From assembly GCA_001643675.2 (NCBI GenBank), contig LSRY02000005.1:1860001-1924000 (forward strand): a DNA stretch of 64,000 nucleotides. Direction: 5' to 3'. Of this stretch, positions 3,034-57,293 are shown piece after piece. The notes below the pieces were generated by a model. The model did not search any database and was not told the DNA's origin. It saw only the letters and a list, made by a program, of their open reading frames with translations. This stretch comes from Monocercomonoides exilis PA203 (lineage: Eukaryota; Protista; Preaxostyla). The stretch's first letter is position 1; each line of letters begins with the position of its first letter. The translations under genes were made by a program, and so were the position numbers.

Positions 3034-3190
3034 TTTCGTTCGAGTTTTGACCAAAAATTTAATCTCAAGGGGATAAAGAAAAAAATTATGATTCTTTTTT
3101 ATATCGTCAAAATATGTGTGTATTTTCCGATTTCGTTCATTTTCTCTTTATTTCATTGAGATAATAATTTTGATCAAAACTCGAATGAAA
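3034..3190. repeat. Degenerate inverted repeat (probable old MITE core)
   Basis: TTTCGTTCGAGTTTTGACCAAAAATTTAATCTCAA versus the reverse complement of TTGAGATAATAATTTTGATCAAAACTCGAATGAAA. Weaker similarity extends outward to about 3010-3215. Confidence 0.6.
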
Positions 3191-3869
3191 ATTTGATTTT
3201 GAAAAGGAATAGCCATTTAGTATTTTTTTTTTAATGTGGGGTGTTTATTGCACAGTCGTGCTCCATAAGAAAAAAAAAAATGAAATTGATCAGCAATTGT
3301 TTCTCTATTTAGAATTTTTCAACCCAATTGAATGGTTTTTAAAAAATGATTTTGCGTTATTTCGTATGTGTTTTTTAAGAAAAAAAATATGCTGGATTTT
3401 TTTCCAGATGAAAATGAACATGCAAGTATTTTTCATCCAAAATTTTGAATTCAATGCATTTTTGTCTGCTGCGATTCCATCGAGACTATTTCATGTGAGA
3501 TACTTGACAATAATTCCATATTTGTTCATTTCCTTCCATTTTCTCCTGCCATCATCGGAAATTATTCTCACAATTCAGAGATGATTTCTATCCGATGTTC
3601 TCTCATTTTGTGGATGATAATTTTATTTCTGAAAAAAGAAATGACAATGATCATAACAGCCATAACAACAGATCTGAAAGAAATATCTTTGTTTCTCTCC
3701 AAAATTGATTCTCACAAATGCAAATGCAAAAAAAGATGGTATTAGCGCTGATGCATTGATGGATGTACACCCTTTTCGTTCATTTTTTTTTGTCAAATGA
3801 TTTTGCTTTATCTCTGTGTGCGATGAAAATGTTGAATGCATTTTGGGTAATTCACTTTTAAAAGCATAG

Positions 3870-8565: not shown

Positions 8566-11500
8566 ATGATAAAAGAGGACAACAAATCAATGAGTTCGAT
8601 AACAAGTGGAGTTTCAGTCGGATATGCTCAGTCAGAAGGGCTCAGCAAAATAGAAACAGTCGGCTTTTCTGTTTTTTCTCCTCTTTACGATCAACCGAAA
8701 CATCCGAACATGAAATGGGAAATTTTCATATGGTCAATAACAATGCTGCAAATGGTTACGATTAGTTTCTTTCGAATCGACATCTTGACGCAAGACGTGA
8801 ATAAGATTTCACAGGTTTGCTGGTTTAATTTTTTATTAATTGAATTAACAAACAAAAATGCTTTTTCTATGTTTTGCAAAATGCTTATCAATTTTTTATG
8901 GAACATGCACAACAAAACTTCGCAGTATTTATGCTATCTTGATGGAACATATCTTGGATATCTTGTGGGAAAATCTGTTTCAGTTGTAATAATGGGATTC
9001 ATGTGCTATTTCATTTTGCTTGTTGTGTACTTACTGGCTGTGGCCGTTTTTCAAGGTTCTATTTCTGGCTCACAGCCATGGATAATATCATTACTTCGTT
9101 GGATTGTGCGAGTAACATATACGATCTTGTTTATCCCGTTAATTTCATTTTGCATAACTTCTTTTGATTGCTATGAATCAGGAGGGCAAATGATTCAGCA
9201 CGGATTCGAAAGCATTTGCTTTAACGATTCAATGTCTATTTCTGGATTTGTTATCTCCGTTGTTATTCTCGCTTATATTTTGTTATCTTCTTTTTTTGTT
9301 AACAATATGATTTACAACCATAATCCGAAATATGGAGGATTATGGTCATCTCCTTGCGGATTATGGCAAGCATTGGATTCATCACTTGTGTATGGATGTG
9401 TGTTTGCAATGAGAATGCTGTATGGCTGGCCTTTCTGGCGCGGAGTTGTAACTGTTGGATCTTCTCTTGTCTTGACAATGTATTTTGTGTATATTCAGCC
9501 AATATACAAACTGAATGGAAATTTGCTTATGGCATGCAAATGGTGCATGTTCGGGTGTTTAAGACTGTTTGGCGAAGTTGGGTATGCAATTGAAGGGGCA
9601 GCACACAATTGGATTGTTACAGTTGTTCTTCAAGTCGTTGGAGTGATTTCTGGAATTGTTATGTGTATCGTGCTTTTGCCTAGGATTGGTCGAAAATCGA
9701 GAGAGAAGAAGTATCTCTTAACTGCTTTTGGGAACCAGCTTTCTGATATTTGTTCTGAAAGTTCGTCTTTGGCCCTGCCTCCATTAAAGAAGCCAGATCG
9801 AATTGAGCCGTCGCTGCGCTTTATCCAAAAGAAAGAGTATCGTACAATGATTTATTTAACATTTGCAGACTATGTGTACACGCAAGCGCTGAAGACGAAC
9901 AAGAGCAACTGCATGCTGTACTTCCAATATGCGACTTTTCTGGCATCGTATCGCAAAAACTACGTGAAGGCCAACACGCTTTTGAGGAAAGCACGAACAC
10001 TGTCTCCTAACTTGTTTTTGAACTTTGTGCTGTTCTGCAAGGCGAAGGAGAATGGCGGAAGAGTCAACGGAGACAGCGGCGGGAACGGGACGAGTGACAT
10101 GAATTCGTTTGCCTTTACTTCTCTATTAGCAAAAGCAGAGAAGCACCACGAGCTGGCAGTGAGTGCGATGAAGGACTTTTTCGAGAATGCGACAGCGATC
10201 CAGCCTGATTACAAATCGATTCCAGTACTTCTGAATTCGATTGTGAAGAATGAAGACATTGCTCGAAAGAGCTACGAAGAACTGATTGCGTCGCACGGGC
10301 AGAACACAGCGGTGTTGAGGAGCTATGCGCGCCTGCTGTTGGACATCTACGACGACGAGGACGAGGCAGAGATGATTCTGAATCGAGCAGACAGGATCGA
10401 AGAAGAGTCTACCAGCTCTGGCGATTCGTTGACGCACACGCAGGCAACAACATCTGCTGATGCTTTGCTTGCCGTGGGCGAAACAGACGACGCTGGAGAT
10501 AGAAAACCCGGGGGAAATGTGAAAACGAGCGCAAGAGGCGAAGATAGCACTGAGAGCGAAGCGAATTATGTTCGTACAGTTAGATGCGGAAGTTTGGAAG
10601 TGACAGCTGGGAGTGTTTATGAGAACCCTGATTCGGGTAAAGGGGCTGAAGGCGGGGCCATCGCGAGCCCTTCTTCTTCTGACCTGCAGAATTTGGATGG
10701 GGAACAAGATGCCCTTGCAAGAAGCGAGATGCAATGGCAGCATTCTTCGAATGACGACAGAAGACATCAAAAATACAATAAAAAAAAGAGAAAGAAGAAG
10801 AAGAAGAAGAAGAAAGATGCAATGATTGTAGATCTGATGATGGGAGGGCGCGGTGAAAGCGGGAGCCAAGCAAATAATATCTCCTTGTTGAGGTTCACAG
10901 TGATATGTTTGCATTTAGTTGATGTAACTGCACTTATAATTGCGCTTGTTGTATATGTTGTGATGTCGAATATATACCAGAAAGACTTGGACACATTGAG
11001 GAATGTGTGCGACTTATCATACCACACTGCTCGTTCTGCTGCAATCAGCTATAACTTCTTTGTGTACGATATCAAGTACAAGTTTGTGAATCAGACGATT
11101 GTAGATGAGTGGATGTCGACGATGGTGCGGAAGACAGAGCTGCTGAAGATGCTAAAGGAGACGTCAGAGAGCCTGGCATCGATGCTTGGCAGAGTGCACG
11201 AGTCTACCACAAATATGGAGCCGTGGGAGACAGCAAGCATCGATACGTACTCGTTTATATTCACCACTAAGAACGAGACACAGTCAGATGGCAGTGTGGA
11301 GGAAGTGGTGGACATCAAACAACAGGTGCTCCATCCGTCGTCAATGTTGGAGGTGATTGCAACAGTGTCACAAATGATATACCACCTCTCAATTTCAGAC
11401 ATGGCTGCGCGCCCTGAAAACCCTGATTATCTGCCAAATATTCAGTATTTGGTGTTCAACTGCCCTGTTCCGATCTTGGACGGAGCGAAAAGAGTGATTA

Positions 11501-14406
11501 TGTCATATTTTGATATTATTAACTCAGGGTGCAATGAAATTATAACTGTAGTTGTACTCATAATAACCATATGCCTTGCTCCTCTAACTGCTATCCAGCT
11601 AATTCTCTTCGTCAGAGTGACGAGAGCAGCTGTGAAGAATCGGATAATGGCTTTCCATGCGATGCTGGATGTGCCAAAGAACAAGATGCAAGGCGTGATA
11701 CGCCGACTTCTGAGAGACGAGGATAACGATGATGATTTTTCTATGTCAGCTGCGTTGAACGAGAATCAAGATGCAAAGGCACCTGATAGCTGCTCCAGCG
11801 ACAAGTATGAGCGTTGGGAAGATGGTGAAGCACAGTTTATGGATGAAGGCACAGACGAAAGCTCGCCAAGTCCTCATCCAAAGAAAAGCACTCGGACTCC
11901 TCGCAGTGGAAAGTGTATCGAAGAGAAGCTGACTGACAATAGCACAAGTTCTTCTTCCACAAGACGTGCATCAAAAGAATTGTCGCATAGAAAGACACCG
12001 CTGGCATTTAACTCGTCTGCGTTGGAACTTGACTCTGAAGAATCGAATTCTCCTCTGCTTGCTGGGCCTGAGCCTTCAGTTGTGTCAATATCGGAAGCAT
12101 TACTTTCGCTTCCTTCTCCGAAATTGCTGTTTGGAGAACAGATTATGTCGACCTCTTCGACTCCAGGATTCCATTTTCAATCTCCCAGAATCGATGAAGA
12201 GAATATGAGAGTGGCACAAATATCTGAACAGAATTCTGGATCTGGTAAATCAGCACGAACATCTCCATTGGATGATCTCTTTTCAGTCAAGCAAAAACAT
12301 GAAACTGAAGTCGCAGCATCAGAAATTCAATCTTATCGCTCGAGGAACGATGGTTCAACTGCTGATCATGTGGTCTTTAAGACATCTGAGATTGAAAGTG
12401 TAACCCAAGATGCTGCTAATCACAAAAGAGCTTCAGAAGATTCTGGGACAGTTGGAACAACCGGAATAACTCCAGCACAGACTGGAAGTAGTTTAAAGAC
12501 TCAACAGTCTCCGTCGTTTGGTGGGAACGTGAATTCTGCGATGCAGTCGAACAAGCAACTGACCAACAATCAGGGTATTGATCTGACAAACGTTGCACAG
12601 TCGCCATCACTTTTGTCAAAGCTATTTCCTGGGAATGGGAGTCAATTGTATTCCGGGATAGTTCCCTCATATTCTGTTTATTCGCAGCAATCGATCTCTG
12701 AGTGCGGCACAAACCCTGTTTTCAGTCCAGCGCGGGTGATATCTCCTGCTGCTTCTTCAAATTTATATCGGAAGAGCTTCTCGTTGCCGAATAGCCAGAA
12801 TACGCATGTTTCACAATTTGAAAAGCAATATGCGGCTCCTAAAGTAAATAAATTATCGAACATAATGCAAAAAGTATCCGATGATAGTGAACCACTTGTT
12901 CATAATCAGCAAATACAGAATAAAATTTCTGATACAAAATTTCAATTTGATGATGAAGATTCCGAAGAATCTGAAAAATACAAGCAGATGGGATTTGTTA
13001 GAAATGCAGTTGACGATACAGCTTGGGAAGAAGGAATGGAAAAGGAGATCGAGAAGCTCGAAGCAGCATACAAACAGCTGCCAAGTCCGGTTACAGGAGT
13101 AATCATTGTTACGAGTGTTCTTTCAGTGCTTCTGGGTGTTGCTACGATCGCATCTACAGTTGTGCTGGTGATATTTTATGTTGAAAGCTTCAAACCAACA
13201 TCTGCAAACATCATCTTATCAGGAATGCGCGCATCGATTCTCTTTCAGATACAATATTTACTGTCAACAATACTTCAGCCGATTCCAATTCTGAAAACAG
13301 ATCAGTCAATCACATTTCCTTCATCGCGTAATCCCATTTTGTACAACTCGTCTCATTGCTCGGGCTCTCCAGCGGTTGCACGCGACTTGCTGGTTCCGAT
13401 GTCGAGATATTTCGAAGCTGTGCATCTTGACTGCCATTTTGGCGATTCAGATTATACGCAGACGGATGATTTCACCTATGATACAGTTTCTGTCACACGC
13501 ATGAAGACGGCGATTAACCACCAGATGCTGCTGAAGGAGGCACAGTGCTACTTGGCTGATTCGGATGACTGTTCGCAAGCAGATGAGTATCGGATGTATG
13601 GGGTGAAAGGAACTATTTATGGCCTGACAACACTTTTGGCACGACTGAGAGTGAATCTTGAGAGGATTTCAAAGATGGATGTGAGTGAAGTTACGATTAT
13701 GAACACGGAAGCGCGTTTTGTTATGACCGCTCTTCGAAGTGATATTGTTCAGGGCTTAAACAAAATGACAAACATGATTTTGGCTACTGGAAAAGAAGAA
13801 GTGCAGGAATCGATCACGATTTTGATTGTGGTTATTGTGTGCTTTTGTTTGCTGTTCATCATATCGATGTTTGGAAACGGATTGACATGGATTGAGGAAA
13901 TCAAATTTATTGAGAATGTATCAGAGAAGTTGTTTAACCTGTTGCCAATGAAAGAAGGCGAGAAAGAGATTGAGATGTTACCATCAATGGTTACTGGGCA
14001 TGCTTCATTTGACAAAGGAAGAGAATCAATTCTCGATGCCGCTCAGCAACTTCTTGCTTCTGTGAAGCGAAATGAGCACATTGAAACTATAATGGCAACA
14101 TTTTTCCAGCTTTCATCAACAGTGCTGGCTGTATTTACGGAAGAAGAAAAAGAAATGGCTGCTAAGAATTACGTTGGAATCGAAAAGCACAAGAAAGAAC
14201 ACATTCTCATAAGGCAGAGGTTGACATTGATAGGAGACCAGCTTTGTTCAAAGAACGATGCGGTGAAAGCAGTTGGAAGAAGAAAGGTTATTTCGTTATT
14301 TGATATGCACTTTACTGACGAAGATATCACCTGTGCCGAAGCTGTTTATGGATTGAATGTGGGAGAGCAAAAAATTGATGAAGAAGAAAACAACATTAAT
14401 CTGTAA
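8566..14406 (+). CDS. TmcB/TmcC-like multi-pass membrane receptor with TPR-like region and C-terminal hemerythrin-like domain
   Basis: N-terminal cluster of hydrophobic helices; TmcB-type helical block (AMKDFF...ARKSYEELIASHGQNTAVLRSYARLLLDIYDDEDEAEMIL); two TM-loop-TM modules separated by Ser-rich linkers; terminal MVTGHASFD..FTEEEKEM..NY..HKKEH..HFTDED. Probable 111-bp in-frame intron 8815-8925, giving about 1909 aa. Confidence 0.8.
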   Translation: MIKEDNKSMSSITSGVSVGYAQSEGLSKIETVGFSVFSPLYDQPKHPNMKWEIFIWSITMLQMVTISFFRIDILTQDVNKISQVCWFNFLLIELTNKNAFSMFCKMLINFLWNMHNKTSQYLCYLDGTYLGYLVGKSVSVVIMGFMCYFILLVVYLLAVAVFQGSISGSQPWIISLLRWIVRVTYTILFIPLISFCITSFDCYESGGQMIQHGFESICFNDSMSISGFVISVVILAYILLSSFFVNNMIYNHNPKYGGLWSSPCGLWQALDSSLVYGCVFAMRMLYGWPFWRGVVTVGSSLVLTMYFVYIQPIYKLNGNLLMACKWCMFGCLRLFGEVGYAIEGAAHNWIVTVVLQVVGVISGIVMCIVLLPRIGRKSREKKYLLTAFGNQLSDICSESSSLALPPLKKPDRIEPSLRFIQKKEYRTMIYLTFADYVYTQALKTNKSNCMLYFQYATFLASYRKNYVKANTLLRKARTLSPNLFLNFVLFCKAKENGGRVNGDSGGNGTSDMNSFAFTSLLAKAEKHHELAVSAMKDFFENATAIQPDYKSIPVLLNSIVKNEDIARKSYEELIASHGQNTAVLRSYARLLLDIYDDEDEAEMILNRADRIEEESTSSGDSLTHTQATTSADALLAVGETDDAGDRKPGGNVKTSARGEDSTESEANYVRTVRCGSLEVTAGSVYENPDSGKGAEGGAIASPSSSDLQNLDGEQDALARSEMQWQHSSNDDRRHQKYNKKKRKKKKKKKKDAMIVDLMMGGRGESGSQANNISLLRFTVICLHLVDVTALIIALVVYVVMSNIYQKDLDTLRNVCDLSYHTARSAAISYNFFVYDIKYKFVNQTIVDEWMSTMVRKTELLKMLKETSESLASMLGRVHESTTNMEPWETASIDTYSFIFTTKNETQSDGSVEEVVDIKQQVLHPSSMLEVIATVSQMIYHLSISDMAARPENPDYLPNIQYLVFNCPVPILDGAKRVIMSYFDIINSGCNEIITVVVLIITICLAPLTAIQLILFVRVTRAAVKNRIMAFHAMLDVPKNKMQGVIRRLLRDEDNDDDFSMSAALNENQDAKAPDSCSSDKYERWEDGEAQFMDEGTDESSPSPHPKKSTRTPRSGKCIEEKLTDNSTSSSSTRRASKELSHRKTPLAFNSSALELDSEESNSPLLAGPEPSVVSISEALLSLPSPKLLFGEQIMSTSSTPGFHFQSPRIDEENMRVAQISEQNSGSGKSARTSPLDDLFSVKQKHETEVAASEIQSYRSRNDGSTADHVVFKTSEIESVTQDAANHKRASEDSGTVGTTGITPAQTGSSLKTQQSPSFGGNVNSAMQSNKQLTNNQGIDLTNVAQSPSLLSKLFPGNGSQLYSGIVPSYSVYSQQSISECGTNPVFSPARVISPAASSNLYRKSFSLPNSQNTHVSQFEKQYAAPKVNKLSNIMQKVSDDSEPLVHNQQIQNKISDTKFQFDDEDSEESEKYKQMGFVRNAVDDTAWEEGMEKEIEKLEAAYKQLPSPVTGVIIVTSVLSVLLGVATIASTVVLVIFYVESFKPTSANIILSGMRASILFQIQYLLSTILQPIPILKTDQSITFPSSRNPILYNSSHCSGSPAVARDLLVPMSRYFEAVHLDCHFGDSDYTQTDDFTYDTVSVTRMKTAINHQMLLKEAQCYLADSDDCSQADEYRMYGVKGTIYGLTTLLARLRVNLERISKMDVSEVTIMNTEARFVMTALRSDIVQGLNKMTNMILATGKEEVQESITILIVVIVCFCLLFIISMFGNGLTWIEEIKFIENVSEKLFNLLPMKEGEKEIEMLPSMVTGHASFDKGRESILDAAQQLLASVKRNEHIETIMATFFQLSSTVLAVFTEEEKEMAAKNYVGIEKHKKEHILIRQRLTLIGDQLCSKNDAVKAVGRRKVISLFDMHFTDEDITCAEAVYGLNVGEQKIDEEENNINL

Positions 14407-22086: not shown

Positions 22087-25000
22087 ATGGTTTGAATTTC
22101 TTTAACAAGCTTATCCAATAAAACTAACAATTTCCCCCTTTTCCTTCTTTTAATCAATGCTATACTTTCAACATTTTTGTTGATATTCAATTTTTATTAT
22201 TTTAGTCGGTAGTTCCGGTGCAATCGTTCCGACAGCAGTCGCTATTGGGCTTTTGTTCTGTTGCAAATTGTTATGAATTGTTTGGACGAAGAGAATATTA
22301 AATTTATTTTCGAATTTACATTTTTTTTTTCATTTTTAAGGAATTCATCTTCACAACCAAAATATCGCGGTAATGTTTTTGTAATACTCGAAAATAATGT
22401 TTCCACCCATGCCCATTTATTCTCTGTTTCTCAAGAAGTTTCTGGGAAGCGTGAATATCTTGTTGCTATTGAAGTTAACGCACCTTTTTTCAATCCAATG
22501 GTATACAATCCTTTTTATTAAACAGAAATAACTTTCAAAAATTTTATTTGCTATAATTTTAATTTTTTTGAAGCTTCAAGACGAAACAACAGTAATGTTT
22601 CGAGATCTTCAAGGAACAATATGGTCATTAACTTTTCGAAATCAAATGGAAGTTAATTATTTAATGGAGAACATCACAAAAATAAAAGGACAGTCAATTC
22701 AATTACCCACACATTCAAAAGGATATGAGCCTGCAGCTCCTTCTCAATTTCCCGCTTCCCAATCTTTTTTTGCTGGTCATCAGTCATTTCAACAACAGAG
22801 TTCTGCTTCAAAAGTATTTGCATCAAACGAATCTTTGCAAATGTATGCTCAGCAAAGGCCGTTCACATATTCACAAGCTGCTTCTTTCGGACAATCGCTG
22901 GCAGAAGGCGCCAAACAAAGAGAAGTTGGGCTGAGTGGCGAGTTTCTGTCTTCATTCCCCGAGGCAGCAGCAGTGTATGGCAGCTCACAGTTTCCATCGT
23001 TTTCACCAAACTTCCGCAATTACGCTGCCTTTTTCTCGATGCTTCGCGGCGAAGGCGACAAAGGCGCTGACGGAGAGCGCGAATGGGAGCGTGAGTGGGA
23101 GCGGGAGCGGGGGATGGAAAGGGAAAGGGAGCGGGGTGGGAGAGAAAGAAGCAGCAGGCTTCGTGTTGGAGGAGGAGAAAGAGGAGGAGGAATTGGAAGT
23201 GGCAGCGGAGTCAGCAGCATCGGGTACGACACGGGGCTGCGCGATCGGAGGACGCACTACGATGCGCGGCAGGTGTTTGTGCCGCCGTTCATCTACACGC
23301 CACACATCCGCCTTGAATCGTCTGCTGCACCTGCTGCTCCTCCCTTTGCGATACCCTTTGCACCACTCACCGACCAATCAGACGACCGCCTCTCTTTCTC
23401 GCTGGACGAGGTGCTGAAATGGCCTCGTGTGTGCTCTTTGCACAGGATGCAGCCTGAAAAGCACTGGAAATCGATCTGCTCGTCGTCTGCAGTGCTGAAG
23501 GAGGCGGCAGAGAAGGAAGGAGTGAGCCTCCGCCCAGCGCTGCTGTTGAAGGCGCTGGCGGAGCTGGTGGATGTGGCGGAGCTGGTGGAGTGTGCGATTA
23601 CAGAGAAACAGGAAGGGCAAGTGAATGAAGGCGCTTCAGATTTGACTCGGAATAAGTCTCCATCTTGGTGTGATTTGAATTTGGCTTCAGAAGGAAATGC
23701 ATCGTCAGCTTCTTTGCCTCATTCATTGTCATCATCATCATCACCACCATCATCTTCTTCTTCTTCGACTTCATTGTCAGAAACAAACTGTGAAGGATCA
23801 ACACAAACAACTACTTTCACTCCTGCTACAGATTCAGAGCAACCAAATACATCTGGTTCAATTTCAACTTCATCATCATCAGCATCATCATCAGCAGCAG
23901 CACCAGAAGAAAGCACATCTTCTTCAGCACATCCCAACTCTTTCTTAACTCCTTCACTTTCTCTTTCACATTCTCCTTCTCCTTCGCCTTCTCCTTCTTC
24001 ATCTCTTTCTCCTTCTCCACAACACCCAAATCAACAACAACCACATCAATCCCAGCAGCAACAGCAACAACAACCTTCCCAGCAACAACAACAGCCAAAC
24101 TTCTACTGCCAGCACCCTCCCTCAGCCTACGGGCTGAGCTGCCCCCTTTTCCCTCTGAAAGGGCAGGACGGGATCGGCTCTGATGTGAGGTCACACAAGA
24201 CGAACGTCGCACTAATAGCTTCCACGTTGACTCAGTCTTTTGTGTCCCCCGTGGTGAGGCTGATGCGCTTTGTGGATGTGAGCCGGCTGGGCAGGGCGTG
24301 CAGAGGAGGGTACTGCTTGAGAGTGCTTGGGGACGGGTTTGGCGCATCGGGTGTGTTTGGCGAGGTGAGGAGGAGGTGCGAACAGGAGGAAAACAGAGAA
24401 GAAAACAGAGAAGAAAGAGAAGAATGTGTGAAGAAGATGGCAGTGAGGCTGAGGAAGTTGAATGAAAATGGAAAGTTTGGCGTGGATGAGACAGGGCAAA
24501 CGACGAATGAAGCAGGAAAAGATGAAAAAAGCTCAAAATTTGGAGGAAGCAAAGCGAAAACAGAGCCGCCGTCGATTCTGAGCACTGCTGACACACTTTC
24601 AACAGGCTCTTCTGTGTCAAACGCACAGGGCATTCAGAACAGCAAGTTAATTTACACTTCTTCTTCTACTACTACTTCTTCTTCTGTATCAACATCTGAT
24701 TCTCAAACTTCTCCTTCAAAAGATCGTTCTTCATTTAAATTATCATCTTCCTCTTCTTCTTCCTCTTCTTCTTCCTCTTCCTCTTCCTCTTCTCAGCAAT
24801 CAACAAACCCACAGTTTCCAGACAGCGTCTTGCACAAAGCCATCCACGCCACTCCGTTTGTGCCAAGAGGAGTAGCTTCATTAGTCGCACCTCATTCATC
24901 AGCCAATACTAATTCTGCTTCTTTAACTTCTTCTTCTGCTTCTGCTTCTTCTTCTTCTTCTTCAATAACATCATCTTCATCATCATCTTCTCCTTCATCT

Positions 25001-25297
25001 GCATTGACACAAGAGATAATTCCCTCTATGTTGAATGTACAGTCAATACAGAGGCAGACTTCGAGTGGTTCGCAATCATCATCGAATGGCCCAGCAAATA
25101 CATCTGCCATTTCCTCTTCTTCATCAACTTTGCCAACTTTGCCAACTTTGCCAACTTTCTCATCATCATCAACATTATCTTCTTCTTCTTTAGATGCTCT
25201 TCATAACATTTCACCTTCTTCTTCTTCTTCTTCCTCCGTCATCACCTCAAACAAAACACTTTCTCTTCCATCATCATCATCATCATCATCATCAACT

Positions 25298-25329
<32 letters not shown>

Positions 25330-25522
25330 TTCATTCTCAAACACCTCCACACCACACACAGCCATATCGCCCCAGCATATGATAGATCTTTCTCAATCAT
25401 CCACAATAACTCAGTCTTCTTCTTCTTCTCTTCACATTTCACAGGGTGCTTTGCCTTCAACAGCTTCTGCTATTCTTCAGCAGCAGCAGCATCAAGGAAA
25501 CAAGAATAATAACAATACAACC

Positions 25523-25558
<36 letters not shown>

Positions 25559-28500
25559 TCTTCTTCACAAATGCCTCCATTTCCTGTTTATTCCAGCGCC
25601 CTCAGCGATTACCCCTTCTCTTTTCCCTTTGGAATGCGTCCATTGAACCAACCTCAACTCTCTCAAACAAACAACAACAGCAACAGCAATACTAACAATA
25701 ATATTCTGTCTGAACAAAACAGCCTTTCGAATCCTTCTTCTTCTTCTTCTTCTTCTTCTTTCTCCTCCTCCTCCTCCTCTTCTTCTTTCTCCTCTTCTTC
25801 TACTTCCTTGCCGTCTTCTTCTCTTGTTCCCATCCCCTTCTCGCTGTATTCACAGCCTCCCTCTTCATTCACTCACCTTCAGACACCCAATGAACAGCAA
25901 GTCATTCACAGGAATGCCAATCTGCAGATGCAAGAGACAGGGCAAATGGCAAGCCAGCTTCAGCTTCAATTAAATCAACAGAACAGTCAACTGAATAACC
26001 AGCTAAGTCAACAAAATCAACAAAATCAACAAAACATGCAAAACATGCAAAACATTCAAAACCAGCAAAATCTACTTAATCCAATGCAACTCATGCAAAA
26101 TTCACGGCAATTTCAATCTCTTCAAGCAGGACAGCTTCTTTCTCCTCGTCTAAGCCATTCTGTGTTGGGTGATTTGGATGAGACAGGCCACTCATTCAGC
26201 ATCTTTGGAAAGCACAGGAGAGAATTCACAGCCGATTCCTATCTGTTTGAAGCAATGTCCCCGTCTTCGCATGCTTCTTCTTCTTCTTCTCTTTCTTCTC
26301 TCTGCACTCCTTCCTCTTCTTCCTCTTCATCCTCCTCTTCTTCTACTTCCATGTCCACATCCAACTTCTCCATCTCCACCAACCACACAGGAATCACCTC
26401 TCCTGTTTCCCCTTCTTCCACTTCATCTTCTTCAGGCACCTCCCTCTCTCGCTCTGCCTCCCCTTTCTCTTCGTTAGAGCCAGAATCTTCTCTTCTTCTC
26501 ACACCCGACGCCTTCCAAACACTCCACTCAAAGGCATCGATTGCTTCGGGGTTTTCACGGCGTTCGCTTCGAAGAAGAGCAGCGCCTTCAACGCGATCGA
26601 TTGATAACAGGAAGGAGAGGAGGAGGAGGAGGATGAAGAGGAAGAGGAAGAGTCTGAGGAAGGGAGAGAGAACGAGGAAGAGGAGAGAAGAAAGAGATAG
26701 AAACAAAGAGGAGAATTGCACGAGCAATGAGAAGAGCCAGGAAAGGAGCGGAGGAAGCACAGGAATGAGTGCAGATGAAGGAAATGAGGATGCTGAGGAT
26801 GTTGAGGAAGATGAAGAAGAGGAAGACGAAGAGGAAAAAGAGGATGATGAATCAGAAGAAAGCGAGGAGACGAGTACAACAGACACAGAAACAGACACAA
26901 GTTCATCAGTTTCACACACTCCAAGCAGAACGATCAGCCAAACCACAGAAAAATCTCCGTCTTTCACAGTTTTTGCAGACATTGCGGAGAAATTGCGACG
27001 CTCTTCGGAGAAATTAAAGGAGGGGAAAGCGGAGGAAATGAAGGGATTCCAGCCGGAGAAATTACGTTCTTCCTTCCCGTTTGAGATCGGAAATGAAAAT
27101 AGAAATGAAGAAGAAGAAGAAGGCAGAGAACTATCCAGAGGAAGAAGTGATTCAAACAGAAGACGAGAAGAAAGAGAGGAAAGAGAGGAAAGAGAAGAAC
27201 GGGGCATTTCAACCCCGAATGTGGACAACTACAACCACTCGAGCTCCACCAAGACGCTTCCGCTGTATGCGCTTGTCTCGCGAAAGGATGCCTCTCCATC
27301 AGCAGCAGAGGCAATGACCGCTTCTCCGCTGCCTTCACCCACGTCACTCACAGTACAGAACATGCCTCTCTCAACCAGCGACAGGATCAGCTCATCTGAA
27401 AAGCACAAGGGAAACAATGATAATATCAATGAAATGTCTCCGGTTTCTGCGTATTTTGTGCCACATCAGCACAGCTTCTCCTACGTCACCTCACTCCATT
27501 CTATTCCTCTGACAGCTCCGCAGCCGAAGCACCTGCCTCCGACGCCTCCTTTTTGTGGGTCGCCAACATCGTATTCACCGCTGCTTCATTCACATTTGGG
27601 AATATCTTTTGAGTCGCTGGATGTGGGCAGCACAAAAGACAGAGGAGAAAGTGATGATGAAACGTCATCATCGTCAAGTGAGTTTGAGGGAATTTCTGGG
27701 AGTGCGAACGGGAAACCAGCAGTGGTCAAAGGAGAAAGAGAAAGAGAAGGAGAAAAAGAAGGAAGCGGAGTAGATGGAACAGGTGTTGGAGATGTAATGA
27801 ATGCAAATGCAGAACAAGAGAGCAACGGAAGCGGGAGCAGAAGAAGCAGCCAGCAAAACTACCGTGGCAGTCTGTCTGTTCCGTTCAAGACACTTCCGCC
27901 GAAGCAAACACGCTCTCATCAACAAGCACAACACATACAACCACATCAGCGCCAAAGCCAAAGTCAGGACACAAACAGCCTTCCTTTGAATGAAGCAAGA
28001 GAATCACAAGAAATCACGCTTGTCCCGAGAAAAGATTCCCTCGAGTCTGAAAAGTGGCAAATGGCGCATTCGCACCACAGCTCGTCTTCTGTTGCGAAGA
28101 AGCTGAATGCGACAGCCGAGTCTCCAGCATCGATTGAATCGCTGAGATCGATGTCACCTTTCTCACACGCGTCAAGCAAGTCAAACTCATCTGCCTCGCA
28201 TTCGCATTCGGAGTCTCCGTTGCATTCACACACGAGATCTCATTCACATTCTCACACACCGTCTCATGCACACTCACACTCACGCTCACACTCTCATTCT
28301 CACTCACAGTCACAATCTCAATCACAGTCTCAGTCTCAGCCGCAATCGCTTTCTCAATCACAGGCAAGCTCACTGGCCTCTTCTGTGACTGTTACACAAA
28401 CAGCAGCAGCTGCAGTTGGTTTGCCATTTGCAGCTGCCCAACCACAGCCAAGTGGAATGGCTGATGCTTCGCTCGCTCCAAACTCATCTTTGTGTATTCC

Positions 28501-31500
28501 ATCGGCTGATCCTGTGAATGGAAATGCACTTTATTTCACTAACGTATCAAGTGTTGCTGTGAACGCTGAGCCGTCACTTGAAATTGCAAGTTACAGCTTG
28601 CAATTGCAATACCATCCGACAGATGAAAACTTTGCTCCTGCAAATGAAGTGACAGCTTCCTCATCTGTTTCATCATCATCATCATCAACATCAACAACAT
28701 CATCCGTTTCTTCAAACAGCCCCTCCTCCGCCAAGAAGAACGCCCACAAGCGCACACGCTCCATGATCAACGTGATTGACCACAAGCAGCGCATGGAAGA
28801 TGCCAAGCGCTTGTTTGCATTGTATTTCTCTCGGGACGATAACGACGCTGAGTGGGTGCGGATGAAAAAGGAGAAGAGCCTTTCATTTGGAAGGTTTGAA
28901 GACAATGCACCGCTTCCACCTTCGCAAAGCACACGGTCAGAGTCAGCCGTGCTGGGGAGATACGAAGACTGCTATCAGAACGAGCAGAGGAAGTATGAAG
29001 CGAAGGAAGGAATGGAAGGAGTGGGAGGGGTGGAAGGTGATGAAGGAGTAGAATACGATGAGGAAATAGAAAGAACAGTAACTGTAGAGACAGAATCGCA
29101 GATGTCGCTGTCGCTTTCAGGGGAGCCTTCGAATGAGTCGAACCAACAGCGCATTGATTCGAAAGAGCAATCAGTCAACTTCATTCATTTGTCCACTCAT
29201 CCCCCCTCAAGTGCATTTGATGTGAAACGCAACATTCTCACTGTCTCAACTTCTGTCCCTGCTATCCAGCCAGCCATCGTCCAGCGGCCTTCTTCTCTGT
29301 TTCCTCCTCTGGCAAAGGCGACTCAGGCGCAACAGGCGGAGCATCAGGATGTGCTCAGAGTGGATGCAGAGAAGCAGATGTATTCGGCACTTTATCCGCC
29401 TCCTGACAGTTCATCTGCACCAAACTTGGGTGTTGTTGCTGCTGGTGTTTCTAATCAAGGATCATCATCATCTTCTTCTTCTTCTTCTAATGCTGCTCCT
29501 TCACTACATTTTGGAATGGCAAATGAATTGCATGATCCTTCTATCAGAAATAATAACATAGACATCTCAAAAGCAACAACTACAACTCAAACGCAGCTGG
29601 CTTCTTCTGCTCCACGATCTCATCTTTCTCCAACAATTTCTCCGTCTTTTTCTCCGGCTGCCGAGTCTTCCACACCCAAAACACTTCCTTTCCACAGCTT
29701 TCTCTCAACCGCTCCTTCTACACCTTCCTCTGCGCGTCATCTGCATTCCAACCGCCGATCAACAGAACAGGCAAGCGGAGCAGCTCAGCCACACAAGTTC
29801 CACCGCATCTCCTCATTTAACGAGTCAACCGCACCTTTCAAGGCCAAATCCCATCTTTCCAACAACACAACCTCACATCCGCTTCCCTTTGGCTCACTTT
29901 CTGTCTCAATGTCTCCTTCTCCCTCACCTTCTCTTTCTCCCACGTCTTTGACTGTTTGCTCGCTTTCTCCACCAGCCAGTGTTTATGCGCCTCCCAAGCG
30001 ATCTCGATCAACTGTTGCGCCCAGCACTGCCCCCACTCATCACTACCCTCTCCATTACTCTGTGTATGATTCAGACTTCTTGTCGACTTTTAGTAATGCA
30101 GCTTCTGCTTCTGCTTCAAACTCGAATTTGAATTCTTCTTCTCCTTCCTCGTCTCCCTCTTCCTCTTCCTCTTCCTCTTCTTCTTCTTCATCAAACGCTT
30201 CACTCTCTGCTTCGCCAGACATCGCATATCACTCCTCCTCCAAGCTGGCCACATCGCCCCATCACTTTGACAGAAACATTCATTCTGCTCTTTCTCCTCT
30301 GCGCAACAATCACTTCAAGAACTTCAATAACAACAACAACATCAACAGTAACTTCATTTCCACTCAGAATTCCCCTGCTCATTATCCTCTCCCGCCCCGC
30401 TCCTTTGAGGAAGAGCAGAGTGCTTACAGACCGTCTGCCGAAGCACGTGCACTGCTTCGTCCTCGCCACATGCCAACACTTTCGTTTCCAGCTGCAAGTA
30501 ATTTCCGCAAAGTTGTCTTGCCTTCTTCGACATCTCCTCCACCTCCTTCCTCTGCTTCCTCTGCTTCTTCTGGCTATCCGACTCTGAAAGGTGCATCTGT
30601 CACTTCTTCTTCCTCATCATCTGCATACAACTTCCAGAATATGGCAGCACGAACAACAAGTCCATTGTTAACACAGAATAATGATGACAACAATAACAAT
30701 AACAATAACAGCATCAACAAAATAGGAGCAGACATTTCATTGAACATCAGCGAAACTCATGATGAACTGCGCCTCACGAACCAGAACCAGAACCAGAGCC
30801 AGCTTGCCGATCTTTCACCTTCTGCGAACAGGCTCTTTGCCACATTCAATTCTCCCTCGCCCAGCCTCCATGCCTCCTACTCCCCCTCACTCGAAGACAT
30901 CGCACCAGCATCGCCCTGGCTACACTCACCAATCTTGAACTACTGCCAATCTTCATCTTCGCTTGCCACATCCCCCACAATCTCCTCCTCTTCTTCATCT
31001 GTCGCCTGCTCGCCTACCTCTGCCATCTCTGGCTACACCTCCTCCATCTCCAACTCCCACTCCACCCCGTCTGACCGCACTTACTCTCTCGTCCCTCGCC
31101 CAGCGTTTCCTGAAGGAGAATCTATTTCTCCGTTCGGATTTGTCTCCACCACCCCAATTTCTCCGTCGTCTGCGTTTGGCGAGCAGCACTCCCCCTTTTC
31201 CTCTCTTCCAGTGGGGATGAACCGCTATGTGCAGTCTTCAGGCTCTATTCGCTCTTCTTTCCCGCTCTCTCCACCTCCGACATCACCTGCGCAATCAAGC
31301 AATTCCCGCCCTTCCTCTCCACTTGTTGCATCACCTGGGGCTTTTGACGCTCATATGCCGTCTTTTGTTTCTTCATCTAGCGCCTCGACTTTTGCTCCTA
31401 TTTCATCAGCTTCGACTACCTCTTCAGTATTCCTTTCATCTTCTTCCACACCTTCTTCTTCTTCTTCCTCTTCGTCCTCATCTTCTTCATCTTCCTCTTC

Positions 31501-32776
31501 CTCTTCATCTGTAGCAAACACCCCAAATTCATCATTTTCTTTCACATCCGCTTCAGCATTCTACAACTCCTCTCAAAATTTCTCTGTAATTCCTCCATCA
31601 AACTCTTCCTCTTCCTCTTCCTCTTCTTACACCTCCTCTTCATTTTCCTCGTCTTCTTCCTCTTTGTATTCCCCATCCTATTCCCCTCCCTCCCCCACCC
31701 CCTCCGACACACTCACTGCCAGCAGCACATTCACCTCCACCTCTTCTGTTGCATCGTCTCTTGTGCCCACTCAAGGAATCCACTTCGCCGATGCCCAGCA
31801 CAACATGTTCTTCTCTATGGACCCTCTCACACCGCTGCCGAACTCACCATCACATACACACAGTCGGTCTGTCTCCTCATTCACGAATTCATATCTGAGG
31901 CGGTCAACAGTGTCAAATGGATTGGTTGCAAACTCCACGAACTCGCTTGCTTCCACGTTAGGTTCAATGCGAATCACACATCCACACCAGCCCCAGACGC
32001 ACGTGCTACAGTTACAGCAACAGCAACAGCAGCAGCAGTCACTCGCACAGATGCTGCGTGGATCAGAAGCCCCATCTCCAAACACGCACCTGTCGACAGC
32101 AGCTGGAGTGTACATGCTTCAGAGTGCTTCGCTTGCTGCAGCGCAATCTGCTTGCTCCACGATGCCTTCGTCTCCACGTTCATCCACATTCAGTCAGAAT
32201 ACAAACAGTTCATTCGATGCAAATGTTCCTTTTTTGTCGCTGGCGTCTGAATCAACTGCAAATGCTCCAATTGTTCCATCTTCATCATCATTGTCATCAT
32301 CGTCTTTATCTTCGTTGAATTCTGAGGGTGAGAAGGATGGACAAGCAAATGAAACACAAAACAGCATTTTGGAGAATAGAAATGAGAGCAGAGGAGATGA
32401 CACAAACCGAATGGAGCTGTCGCTGGTGGATGTGCTGGACTCGTTGGAGTCATCAAAACCACTCGAAAAATTACATGTTTCTCCATAAGACAGATATGCA
32501 AGTGAAACTAATTCATCTTCCTATAACCCTTGCTTGCAAGCATTTCTAACGTTGGTGAAGGAAGAAAATGTTATAAGTGATTCCGTGCAGCATCAAAATG
32601 AATTAGTTGATGCTTCGAATCAACTGCAATCATCGTCAGCATTTGCTGCGCAAAGCAGATCAAATAAAAGCTCATCAGCTGGAACAGTGGAAGAAAATGA
32701 TGAAAATTCCATTAGAGGAACAGAATACATTCGAAAGCGAATGGAAGCTCAGGCCAATGCTGTTCAACAAGAATGA
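22087..32776 (+). CDS. Giant (about 3450 aa) Ser/Gln/Pro-rich disordered protein with N-terminal PH/WH1-like (FKBP15 N-terminal-like) domain
   Basis: Exons 22087-22089 (ATG only), 22206-22279, 22341-22500, 22574-32476, 32561-32776, all frame-consistent; last intron has CTAAC near the AG. N-terminus VANCYEL..KYRGNVFVIL..HLFSVSQ..LVAIEV..TVMFRDLQGTIWSLTFRNQMEVNYLM. The rest is mostly low complexity. Confidence 0.75.
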
Positions 32777-54668: not shown

Positions 54669-57261
54669 TCAAGCACTGTGAAGCTGAGAAGAAGAGGAGG
54701 AGGAGGAAGAGGAGGAGGAAGAGGAAGAGGAAGTAGATGACAAAGAAGAAGCAAATCCCGAATGAGAAGGAGATTGGTTTTGGTTATCTTTGCTCTGGGG
54801 AGAGAAAGAAGAAGATAGAGAAGAAGGAGAAGAAGATGAAGAAGATAGAGAAGAAGAGCGATTGAGCGGTGTGTTGGCGTTCTGAGTGATGTGGAATGGA
54901 TGTGGTGAAGAAAATGTGTGTGAAAGAGAAGAAGGAGATGATGACGATGAAGATGAATGTGAAGAAGGAGGAGAAGGAGAAGAAGAATGAGAAGAAGAAG
55001 GCAATGAAGGGGAAGATAACGAAGAAGAAGAAGAAGAAGAAGGAAGTGCAAGTGATTGAGAGATAGGAGCAAATGGTTGAATGTTTGCAGAAGGAAGAGG
55101 AAGAGAAAGGTGAAGCGGAAGCGGAAGAGGAAGAGGAAGAGGAAAAGAAGGTTTTAGGTTCTGTTGCTGTGTGAGGGCGAGTGAATTACCTGTGTTGAGG
55201 GCAAATTGTGTTTGAGTGAATGAAATGTTGGATGAGGAAGAGGAAGAAGAGGAAGAGGAAGAAGAAGAATTTGAAGAATCGACTGGCCGAAATGGAAGCT
55301 GAGGAGGAAAAGAAGAAGAAGAAGAAGAAGATGATGATGATGATGATGAAGCAAATGGGTGTGAAGTGATTGAAGGTATAAGCAAAGAAGGATCAGTTGA
55401 AACAAGAGAAGAAGAAGAGGAGGAAGAGGAAGAAGAAGGAAACGGACGAGAAGGAGAAGGAGAAGAAGAAGATGCAGAAGAAGAAGAAGAAGAAACAGAA
55501 GCTGAGAGGAAAGCAGAAACAGAAGAAGGGTTTGCAGAGGGAAGGGTATTTGTCCAAGGGCTGATTGCACTGGAAGGAGAAGGAAGGAGACGCTGGGAAG
55601 GAATAGAGAGCATGTGAGGATAAGGGAGAGAGGGAAAAGAAGGAGGAGAGGAGGAAGAAGAGGAGGAAGGAGAGGAGGAAGGAGAGGAAGAAGAAGAAGA
55701 TAGTTTGTGAGGTGTGGATGTGGCATTAATAGCAGGAAGTGAATGAAAACCACTAGAAAGTGCAGAAGAAGAAGAAGATAAAGAAGAAGAAGAAGATGAT
55801 GATGATGAAGAAGAAGAAATATCATTTGCCTGTGAAGAAAGCTGCAAGCTGTGAGTATTGCGAATGGAAGGGGAGTAAGTGACACCAGGAAAAGGAGGGA
55901 CAGAAGAAGAAATAGGAAAATGCATTGCTAATGGCTCTGAAAGAGGCTTTTCATCAGAAGAACGCTTGGGAATGTAGATGACTTCAGATGGTTGTTTGGA
56001 TGAGTGAGAGGAAGAGGATGAGGTTGAAGAGGATGTGGTGGATGTGGAAGAAAGAGAAGAAAGGGAATAAGGGGAAGAGAGGGAAGAGAGGGAAGAGTTG
56101 AGAGAGGGAAGGAGCGAGGGAAGTGACAATACTAATGTGAAAAGACAAATGGAAATTAAAAGAAAAGAAAAAAGATGAAAATTTTTTTCAGAATTTGTAA
56201 GGTTTTATTCATAAATAAAAATAAATAAATAATTGTCATTATAAAACAGAAAATAAAAGAGAAAACAAAAAAACACACATTTTCCGCTTTCTATTTTATC
56301 TTTTCCTTCTCTCTGCATCTGAGCCAGCTCCATCGCAGCAGACAGCGTCTGTACAGCTGTGTGTGTTGGCGCATGTGAAAGTGGCATGTGAGAAGAAGAA
56401 GAAGGAGAAGGAGAAGGAGAAATGGAAGAAGAAGAGGAGGAGGAAGAGGAAGAAGAAAGAGAAGTCAAAAAATCTCCTTTCCCTCTCTTCTCCTCTTCTC
56501 CATTATTATTTTCTACCCCAACATCTTCTCCTTCTCCTTCTCCTTCTCCCTCTCCCTCTCCTTCTCCCTCACCTCCTCCTTCTTCTTCTTCTCCAATCCC
56601 ATCCTTCACATTCGCCTCCTTCAGCAGCATAATCATTGCCACCGGGTCGATCGACAAGTCATTCTTCTTCTGTGCATTCTGCAGTGCCTGTATGAGAGCT
56701 CGTGGCTTCCTTCCTTTCTTCTTCTTCGTCTTCTGCCAGATATTCATCAGATAGTTGATTGTGTTCACTTGTGGCGTGTATGTGGATGAAGGAGCAGAAG
56801 ATGTGTCAGAAATGGAGGAGGAGGAAGAGAAGGAAGAGAAGAAGGTTGTGTGGTTATTTGATGGAGTGGATAAGGGTGTTTGAAGCAAAGATGAAGAAGA
56901 AGGAAAAGAAGAAGACATGTTTTCTGATTTAAAGTCAGCAGTTGCAGAGCCAATTTCCTTTGGCAGTGAAAACATTGGATTGTTCATGGAATCCATTCCG
57001 AAAGAAGGATATGGCAAGAAAGAAGAAGCAACAGAAGAAGAAGAAGAAGAAGTTGAAGAAGAAGAAGGATTAGAAGAAGAAGATGGATGCATCTGAATAG
57101 CACTTGGTGAAAAGCCCAGCTGTTTCTCCATCCATGCAATGTCCCTTGGAACAAATGGACTTCCTTTCTCTTCTTTCTCTCCTGCGTTGCTTTTCTCTTT
57201 GTTTTTTATCCAATTCGCCCCTTTTTCCACTGACATCAACGTGGAGAGGAGGAAATCTGAA

Positions 57262-57293
<32 letters not shown>

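Follow-up and report, generated by a model that had tools for sequence, protein, structure and literature searches.

We analyzed a 64,000-nucleotide stretch of the Monocercomonoides exilis PA203 genome (contig LSRY02000005.1, positions 1,860,001 to 1,924,000 of the forward strand; here called the window, within which positions are counted) and focused on one giant gene, MONOS_691. M. exilis is a gut protist, and the oxymonads, to our knowledge, are the sole eukaryotes without any mitochondria. MONOS_691 encodes a membrane protein of the TmcB/TmcC family with about 12 predicted helices, and its C-terminal domain, here called the tail, is derived from hemerythrin and keeps one half of the di-iron site. 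Overall, the explanation that we lean towards is that this half-site tail serves the membrane protein as a single-metal sensing module. The single-metal sensor step, taken by itself, is a tentative proposal that we hold with some doubt; the remainder of the explanation is well supported.

The tail of MONOS_691 is related to hemerythrins in sequence and predicted fold

We compared the tail with the hemerythrin profile TIGR02481 (hemeryth_dom) and found that it aligned over positions 6-124 of 126 (E 9e-12, 45.1 bits). A direct sequence search against PDB chains returned no hemerythrin, and a family profile was needed: the profile built from 12 paralogous tails (alignment A1) matched a Methylococcus bacteriohemerythrin (4xpw) and DcrH-Hr in the PDB. 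When the tail profile was run against 1.84 billion representative sequences, oxymonad tails came first, followed by about 100 bacteriohemerythrin-sized proteins (roughly 100-170 amino acids) that aligned in register.

The predicted structure points in the same direction. AlphaFold2 modeled the tail as four main helices (pLDDT 73). Foldseek paired this model with DcrH-Hr at a probability of 1.0, but with an E value of 0.02 that is short of the significance line, and the Foldseek matches were re-scored with VIA-align. After re-scoring, the nine best PDB matches were all hemerythrins (Z 11.8-13.4, root-mean-square deviation 2.4-3.0), in alignments that start at model residue 27 or 28, loop included. 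DcrH-Hr (3waq) ranked first, with a Z of 13.4 and a deviation of 2.6 over 117 residues, and bacterial and invertebrate hemerythrins followed. Sequence identity in the model comparisons was 16-18% to hemerythrins and about 6% to other bundles. The best shape match in the ESM Atlas was a bacteriohemerythrin cluster (TM 0.72).

Paralogues with the same architecture and all seven of the metal ligands pass the curated hemerythrin cut-offs. Because these paralogues of the same genome still have every ligand, we conclude that the tail descends from a canonical di-iron hemerythrin. As judged by homology and by the modeled fold, the terminal domain is a real hemerythrin fold, though not by the defining metal signature.

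One half of the metal site is conserved

The hemerythrin signature H-HxxxE-HxxxH-HxxxxD comprises five histidines, one glutamate and one aspartate; the first two histidines hold Fe2, the iron that binds O2, three histidines hold Fe1, and the glutamate and aspartate bridge the irons (PMC9388753). The tail of MONOS_691 has five of these seven ligands. Alignment to canonical hemerythrins placed the seven positions as follows, with the two substituted residues numbered in the open reading frame (ORF):

14020-14022 (+): Arg1819, in place of His25, an Fe2 ligand
14131-14133 (+): Val1856, in place of His54, an Fe2 ligand
14143-14145 (+): retained Glu
14188-14190 (+): retained His
14200-14202 (+): retained His
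14308-14310 (+): retained His
14323-14325 (+): retained Asp

When the ligand columns were aligned to the family profile, canonical hemerythrins read H,H,E,H,H,H,D, MONOS_691 reads R,V,E,H,H,H,D, and the clade around it, here called the Arg clade, reads R,x,E,H,H,H,D. We measured conservation in 39 non-redundant oxymonad tails, whose median pairwise identity is 36% and whose mean column conservation is 51%. The arginine was conserved at 95%, the glutamate at 97%, the three histidines at 100%, 100% and 97%, and the aspartate at 100%. The His54 column varied, with V, T, Q, E, S, A, Y and I all present. Among paralogues the arginine is encoded by AGA, AGG, CGA and CGC, and the use of four codons indicates that it has been held through synonymous turnover. 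We conclude that the Fe1 half-site, as judged from these alignments, is under strong purifying selection. Because both Fe2 histidines are gone and Fe2 is the O2-binding iron, classical O2 sensing by MONOS_691, and canonical O2 binding by its tail, are unlikely.

A second conserved element lies directly after the HxxxH helix. The Arg clade conserves the motif RQRLT (14209-14226; R112-T116 of alignment A1) at 95-100%, whereas the intact-site paralogues and bacterial hemerythrins do not have it. It may be a partner-binding or modification site.

TmcB-hemerythrin proteins form a large family in M. exilis

To place MONOS_691 among its relatives, we scanned the 82-Mb M. exilis assembly, in which all counts are lower bounds. 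There were 69 loci with a TPR_TmcB domain and, after matches of the A1 profile and TIGR02481 were merged, 62 distinct hemerythrin or hemerythrin-like loci, 18 of them above the curated TIGR02481 cut-off. At 58 of the 69 TPR_TmcB loci a hemerythrin or hemerythrin-like domain follows downstream on the same strand, 2.7-8.3 kb away, and nearly always shares a giant frame with the TPR_TmcB domain (for 20 TmcB loci, hemerythrin status comes from the genome-wide TIGR02481 scan). Seen from the other side, a TmcB-type membrane protein ends in the hemerythrin at 58 of the 62 hemerythrin loci. Of the remaining four, two are copies of the 3' end of a single gene of this type, one is a short fragment, and one is a giant frame without a TPR match. 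No free-standing hemerythrin gene was seen in the scan.

The fusion is not universal, because 11 of the 69 TPR_TmcB loci had no downstream hemerythrin match. Four full-length TmcB paralogues (L040, L047, L048 and L049; 2282-2598 codons) gave no hemerythrin in a hidden Markov model search and no other Pfam domain.

All seven ligands are kept in at least six full-length paralogues (L042/L062, L053 and L057-L060). The L042 ORF (L042:1206-9155 = G000:C47:111705-119654) is 2650 amino acids long, lies 1.74 Mb upstream of MONOS_691 on the same contig, and passes both Pfam TPR_TmcB and Pfam Hemerythrin PF01814 (31.4 bits vs 25.3). The two 3' end copies derive from this gene and are on the same contig (L061, G000:C47:469549-472920; L065, G000:C47:217000-221500). 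They are about 96% identical to it over 1.9 kb that spans loop 2, the last transmembrane (TM) helix and an intact hemerythrin, and L065 has a stop inside the hemerythrin. From their sequence, L061 and L065 look like segmental duplicates or pseudogene fragments rather than free-standing hemerythrin genes.

One gene model in the family deserves comment. The annotated protein MONOS_12628 (P0013) leaves the family alignment halfway into the hemerythrin domain, and the genomic frame at its locus (L012, G000:C7:1764855-1768334) holds the whole domain, with ligands R,V,E,H,H,H,D. MONOS_12628 probably has a wrong 3' gene model.

The half site is shared by three genera

We traced the long matches from outside M. 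exilis, and all were in Blattamonas nauphoetae (genome GCA_033064195.1, JARBJD; PMC10703272) except one in Streblomastix. The Streblomastix strix match (SNRW01, P0027) reads R,T,E,H,H,H,D; the tail is missing from a second Streblomastix protein, P0161, which is truncated. One further match was a fragment from a JGI metagenome. The long matches with a canonical site outside oxymonads were bacterial sensors with PAS/GAF/SpoIIE, methyl-accepting chemotaxis protein (MCP) or GGDEF-EAL domains, not TmcB proteins. The half-site pattern is conserved (95-100%) in a clade of Monocercomonoides, Blattamonas and Streblomastix.

We built a maximum-likelihood tree of loop 2 plus tail with 47 rows, excluding the fragments L018 and L041 and using the second tail of P0015; the row labeled Bn_P0045 is M. 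exilis locus L051. The tree contains a split supported at 100/99, with six M. exilis paralogues that have canonical or near-canonical sites on one side and the 41-row Arg clade on the other. It was midpoint-rooted, and the polarity, with the canonical site first, rests on the fact that every bacterial and animal hemerythrin has the canonical site. In several sub-clades of the Arg clade, sequences of M. exilis and Blattamonas are interleaved, which argues that the half site is older than the split between these genera. MONOS_691 itself (L003) is one of about 16 close paralogues that belong to a recent expansion in M. exilis.

In the Blattamonas protein P0015 (L031, JARBJD010000021.1; 3353 amino acids), one hemerythrin-like match lies near residue 1475 and another at 3165-3338. 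This gene model probably merges two tandem TmcB-hemerythrin genes.

Gene structure and expression of MONOS_691

The gene is a single open frame at 8566-14406 on the plus strand, with 1946 codons from start to stop when unspliced. Its product is 100% identical to P0001, which is MONOS_691, and the annotated protein is 1909 amino acids long. The database entry reads "uncharacterized protein" and records PF25474 as the sole domain. The annotated protein is without the 37 codons of an in-frame intron. RNA-seq contigs from four runs of one study cover the full gene with zero mismatch, and contigs of four runs contain the spliced joint 8811->8923 (cut +3), which skips precisely 111 nt. Because RNA contigs cover the gene and carry the intron-skipping joint, we conclude that MONOS_691 is transcribed and spliced. 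Downstream of the intron, mature residue numbers equal ORF residue numbers minus 37. The features of the gene are as follows:

8566-14406 (+): MONOS_691 coding region, TmcB/TmcC-family membrane protein, 1909 amino acids spliced (frame, identity and RNA contigs)
8722-9693 (+): N-terminal membrane domain, about 8 hydrophobic helices, intron included (Kyte-Doolittle scans)
8815-8925 (+): in-frame GT..AG intron, 111 nt, 37 codons removed (annotated protein without these residues; spliced RNA joint)
10078-10413 (+): TPR_TmcB domain (PF25474), ORF residues 505-616 (Pfam E 2.5e-17, 63.4 bits)
10414-10878 (+): low-complexity linker with a poly-Lys tract from ORF residue 739, directly before the next membrane helix (sequence)
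10879-11625 (+): first TM-loop-TM module: TM 10879-10980, loop 1 10981-11514, TM 11515-11625 (hydropathy)
11626-13074 (+): Ser-rich linker, 483 amino acids, probably disordered (sequence)
13075-13893 (+): second TM-loop-TM module: TM 13075-13194, loop 2 13195-13794, TM 13795-13893 (hydropathy, AlphaFold2)
13894-13986 (+): conserved juxtamembrane helix and linker with the motif W..E...F..VS.KL..LLP (alignment A1)
13987-14340 (+): hemerythrin-fold domain with half site, ORF residues 1808-1925 (TIGR02481, AlphaFold2, alignment)

A second joint was seen in the RNA data. In two of the four runs, one contig passes directly from position 9179 to 10024; the 844 nt left out have AG..AC ends, and the shorter side of this joint is just 26 letters. 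Rather than showing a true splice, this contig is probably a chimera of paralogues. An Rfam scan of the window gave no matches. The window also contains two more giant open frames, at 22568-32488 (+; 3306 codons) and 56205-62018 (-; 1937 codons). Neither matched a Pfam family at E values up to 0.001, and neither was a TmcB locus in the genome-wide scan.

Membrane architecture

The architecture was first sketched in an initial annotation made from the letters and their open reading frames, and most of that sketch held. It had described a multi-TM N-terminus, a TmcB-type TPR-like block, two TM-loop-TM modules and a terminal domain at 13975-14345. A Kyte-Doolittle scan gave 12 hydropathy peaks in total, of which 8 are N-terminal, within mature residues 53-332 (the first 370 ORF residues), and 4 are strong later ones. 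By this prediction MONOS_691 is a large multi-pass membrane protein, as the TmcB/TmcC family would have it. The N-terminal membrane domain matched no Pfam family. The TPR_TmcB block scored 63.4 bits against a gathering cut-off of 27, which makes the protein a member of PF25474. In ORF residues, the first module consists of TM 772-805, loop 1 of about 178 amino acids and TM 984-1020, and the second of TM 1504-1543, loop 2 of about 200 amino acids and TM 1744-1776. Module order and loop lengths are kept in 29 relatives, and the linkers range from about 220 to 1800 amino acids. Between the last membrane helix and the tail, the juxtamembrane columns W4, L18, L21 and P23 are at least 95% conserved. 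The computed limits of the terminal domain differ from the earlier ones by a few bases, and the motifs that had drawn attention to it (TG..FD, F.EEE.EM...Y, HxxxH and HxxxxD) are all present. A Pfam search of MONOS_691 found no PAS, cyclase, kinase, HAMP, MCP or E3 domain; the missing PAS and cyclase had been noted before. HAMP (PF00672) and MCP (PF00015) gave no match at E values up to 1.

The initial annotation had also expected the C-terminus to be cytosolic. An even number of predicted helices, four, separates the TPR block from the tail, which puts the two on the same side of the membrane. Assigning that side to the cytosol is an inference from the TPR fold, the poly-Lys tract and the disordered linkers. 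Read from sequence in this way, the TPR block and the tail are presumably cytosolic, and loops 1 and 2 presumably face outward or into a lumen.

We next considered the two loops. Loop 1 is 156-207 amino acids long in 24 of 29 relatives, the 5 larger values being split-helix artefacts, and it has two NxS/T sites and 2 Cys. An origin of the two modules by internal duplication was rejected: BLASTP found nothing and hhalign gave a probability of 1.3%. For loop 2 and its two helices, AlphaFold2 run on 29 sequences returned a four-helix-bundle-like model that continues unbroken into both membrane helices (pLDDT 86). Its best structural matches by VIA-align were the ligand-binding domains of PilJ (8wdf, Z 11.9) and McpN (6gcv, Z 11.1), and further matches were QseE, PcaY, MCP2201, a sensor kinase domain, TorS and Tsr. 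Against the PilJ, McpN, PcaY and Tsr ligand-binding domains the Z values were 8.7-11.9, a range usual for helical bundles. The protein-language-model neighbors of a paralogue's loop 2 equivalent were PilJ, CZB, CHASE3 and 4HB_MCP clusters (0.81-0.85). The loop 2 sequence had no Pfam or PDB relatives. In the model, loop 2 thus shows a resemblance, and a resemblance only, to bacterial PilJ/4HB sensor domains.

A proposed mechanism and its alternatives

In the mechanism that we propose, the tail would function without di-iron O2 binding. One metal ion would be held at the three-His Fe1 site, and the Arg side chain would sit at the former place of Fe2, paired with both carboxylates. Metal occupancy or oxidation state would alter the conformation of the tail, and the tail, about 30 residues past the last membrane helix, would tune or relay the state of the receptor-like body. 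The one evident partner-binding module in the protein is the TPR block. In DcrH-Hr the ordering of an N-terminal loop is redox-dependent (PMC9388753), which makes coupling between tail and membrane plausible.

Several observations weigh against this reading. The TIGR02481 score of 45.1 bits is below the curated 51.75, and the PF01814 score of 16.9 bits (E 0.009) is below the gathering cut-off of 25.3. Helical-bundle matches with Z under about 13 can mirror a shared arrangement. The site is not frozen: within the Arg clade, three sequences have histidine (CAC) again at the first position and one, from Blattamonas, has it at the second. The Glu-rich surroundings (the EEE.E motif) might provide substitute ligands for a second metal. 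Finally, Pfam recognized no output domain (kinase, cyclase, MCP or E3) in MONOS_691.

The absence of an output domain would also suit a metal-free pseudo-hemerythrin, whose four-helix bundle would serve structure, dimerization or partner binding. Such domains have a precedent in the H2 hemerythrin-like subdomain of Arabidopsis BTSL2, which is without a di-iron center (PMC12022348), and the clade-specific surface motif RQRLT could be the binding site. We nevertheless consider this unlikely. In three genera and dozens of paralogues, conservation within the domain peaks at the five remaining ligands (97-100% vs a mean of 51%), and unless a metal or a comparable buried polar network is present, this is difficult to account for.

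We give a still lower probability to a working di-iron tail that senses O2 (or NO, or iron) like DcrH or FBXL5, with other residues or water in place of the missing histidines. The fold and five ligands are kept, conserved acidic residues adjoin the bridging Glu, and FBXL5-type domains are reported to be functional with an asymmetric set of di-iron ligands (PMC12022348). An O2 sensor would also fit the biology of M. exilis, which is anaerobic and sensitive to O2 and has an expanded set of O2-stress genes (PMC6759080). However, both Fe2 ligands were lost together, and O2 binds at Fe2 (PMC9388753). At the first position stands a cationic Arg, 95% conserved, which is expected to repel a second cation, and the variable second position offers no consistent substitute ligand. 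Sensing of O2 could, moreover, be covered by the intact-site paralogues.

Least probable of all, though by a small margin, is that MONOS_691 is a transporter or channel (its 8-helix N-terminal domain) with the tail as a regulatory cap: bacterial P1B-5-type ATPases do carry a C-terminal cytoplasmic hemerythrin-like domain (PMC9388753), the N-terminal domain matches no known family and no signaling output domain is present, but there is no similarity to any Pfam or NCBIfam transporter family, loop 2 as modeled looks like a ligand-binding sensor domain, and the tail is more than 1300 residues away from the N-terminal domain.

Weighed against these alternatives, the single-metal half-site tail on a TmcB/TmcC membrane protein is the reading that we retain. 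The initial annotation had called the terminal domain hemerythrin-like and the protein a candidate sensor of O2, metal or redox state. A hemerythrin-like domain is borne out by the profile, the four-helix AlphaFold model with hemerythrins as its best PDB matches, and the canonical paralogues; the replacement of the first two histidines of the signature by Arg1819 and Val1856 was not mentioned in it. As for sensing, the classical O2 role became unlikely with the loss of the Fe2 histidines, and a metal or redox role stays a candidate.

Relation to known systems

The closest known counterpart is DcrH of Desulfovibrio vulgaris (PDB 2awc, 2avk and 3waq), a methyl-accepting chemotaxis protein with a C-terminal hemerythrin domain. 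Both are membrane proteins of anaerobes in which two membrane helices frame a domain outside the cytoplasm and the C-terminal hemerythrin fold is on the cytoplasmic side, a placement that is presumed in the case of MONOS_691. DcrH has HAMP and MCP domains, keeps all seven ligands and binds O2 (PMC9388753). MONOS_691, in contrast, is eukaryotic, has about 12 helices, a TPR_TmcB block and the Fe1 half only, and is without HAMP or MCP; the bacterial matches P0069 and P0127 do have both of these domains.

MONOS_691 resembles the TmcB/TmcC family in its TPR_TmcB score, far over the cut-off, and in being a large multi-pass membrane protein. The PF25474 family is named after Dictyostelium tiny-macrocyst proteins. 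In the initial annotation, TmcB proteins of other protists were described as usually carrying PAS or cyclase domains. TmcB clusters in the ESM Atlas, from Preaxostyla, Parabasalia and Chytridiomycota, have only PF25474 as a common family, and for the Parabasalia and Chytridiomycota clusters no hemerythrin family is listed, which is weak evidence. Nearer relatives are the intact-site paralogues, such as the L042 ORF, which share the TPR_TmcB block, the two TM-loop-TM modules and the terminal hemerythrin. Their ligands, in contrast, read H,H,E,H,H,H,D, and in the tree they are sister to the Arg clade (100/99). Other eukaryotic hemerythrin-like domains used for sensing, and not for O2 transport, are those of FBXL5 and BRUTUS/BTSL. 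These proteins are soluble E3 ubiquitin ligase components whose ligand changes differ from those of MONOS_691, in which Pfam found no F-box/LRR or RING/CHY E3 module.

Bacteria are already known to have hemerythrin tails on membrane sensors (DcrH and the P1B-5 ATPase), and eukaryotes to have hemerythrin-like sensors (FBXL5 and BRUTUS). A literature search found no description of TmcB-hemerythrin fusions or of the half site, in keeping with the earlier suggestion of an undescribed receptor architecture. It is, though, no one-off: at least 58 genes of this genome have it (58 of the 69 TPR_TmcB loci), and Blattamonas and Streblomastix have members as well. In the M. exilis genome paper, hemerythrin comes up solely among the O2-stress genes, with a bacterial origin presumed for it (PMC6759080). 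Because 58 of 62 hemerythrin loci end TmcB-type proteins, this O2-stress "hemerythrin" may be receptor tails rather than a free protective protein.

Implications for oxymonad sensing

A bolder combined proposal is one that we think fairly improbable as it stands. It holds that the half-site tail is a new hemerythrin-derived metal center, with one metal, three His and two carboxylates, and a buried Arg standing in for the second iron, and that the oxymonad TmcB-hemerythrin family of about 60 members, intact and half-site together, is the main membrane system reading oxygen, redox state or iron.

Little is known of how anaerobic protists sense their oxygen, redox or iron status, and oxymonads are without characterized receptors. 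The family described here is a candidate metal or redox sensing system, within which the intact-site paralogues are the better O2-sensor candidates. It also constitutes a natural experiment, because intact di-iron tails and half-site tails sit on one receptor chassis and selection has kept both since before Monocercomonoides and Blattamonas split. Once shown, the ligand of the half site would widen the known chemistry of the hemerythrin fold and would give a handle on membrane signaling in oxymonads.

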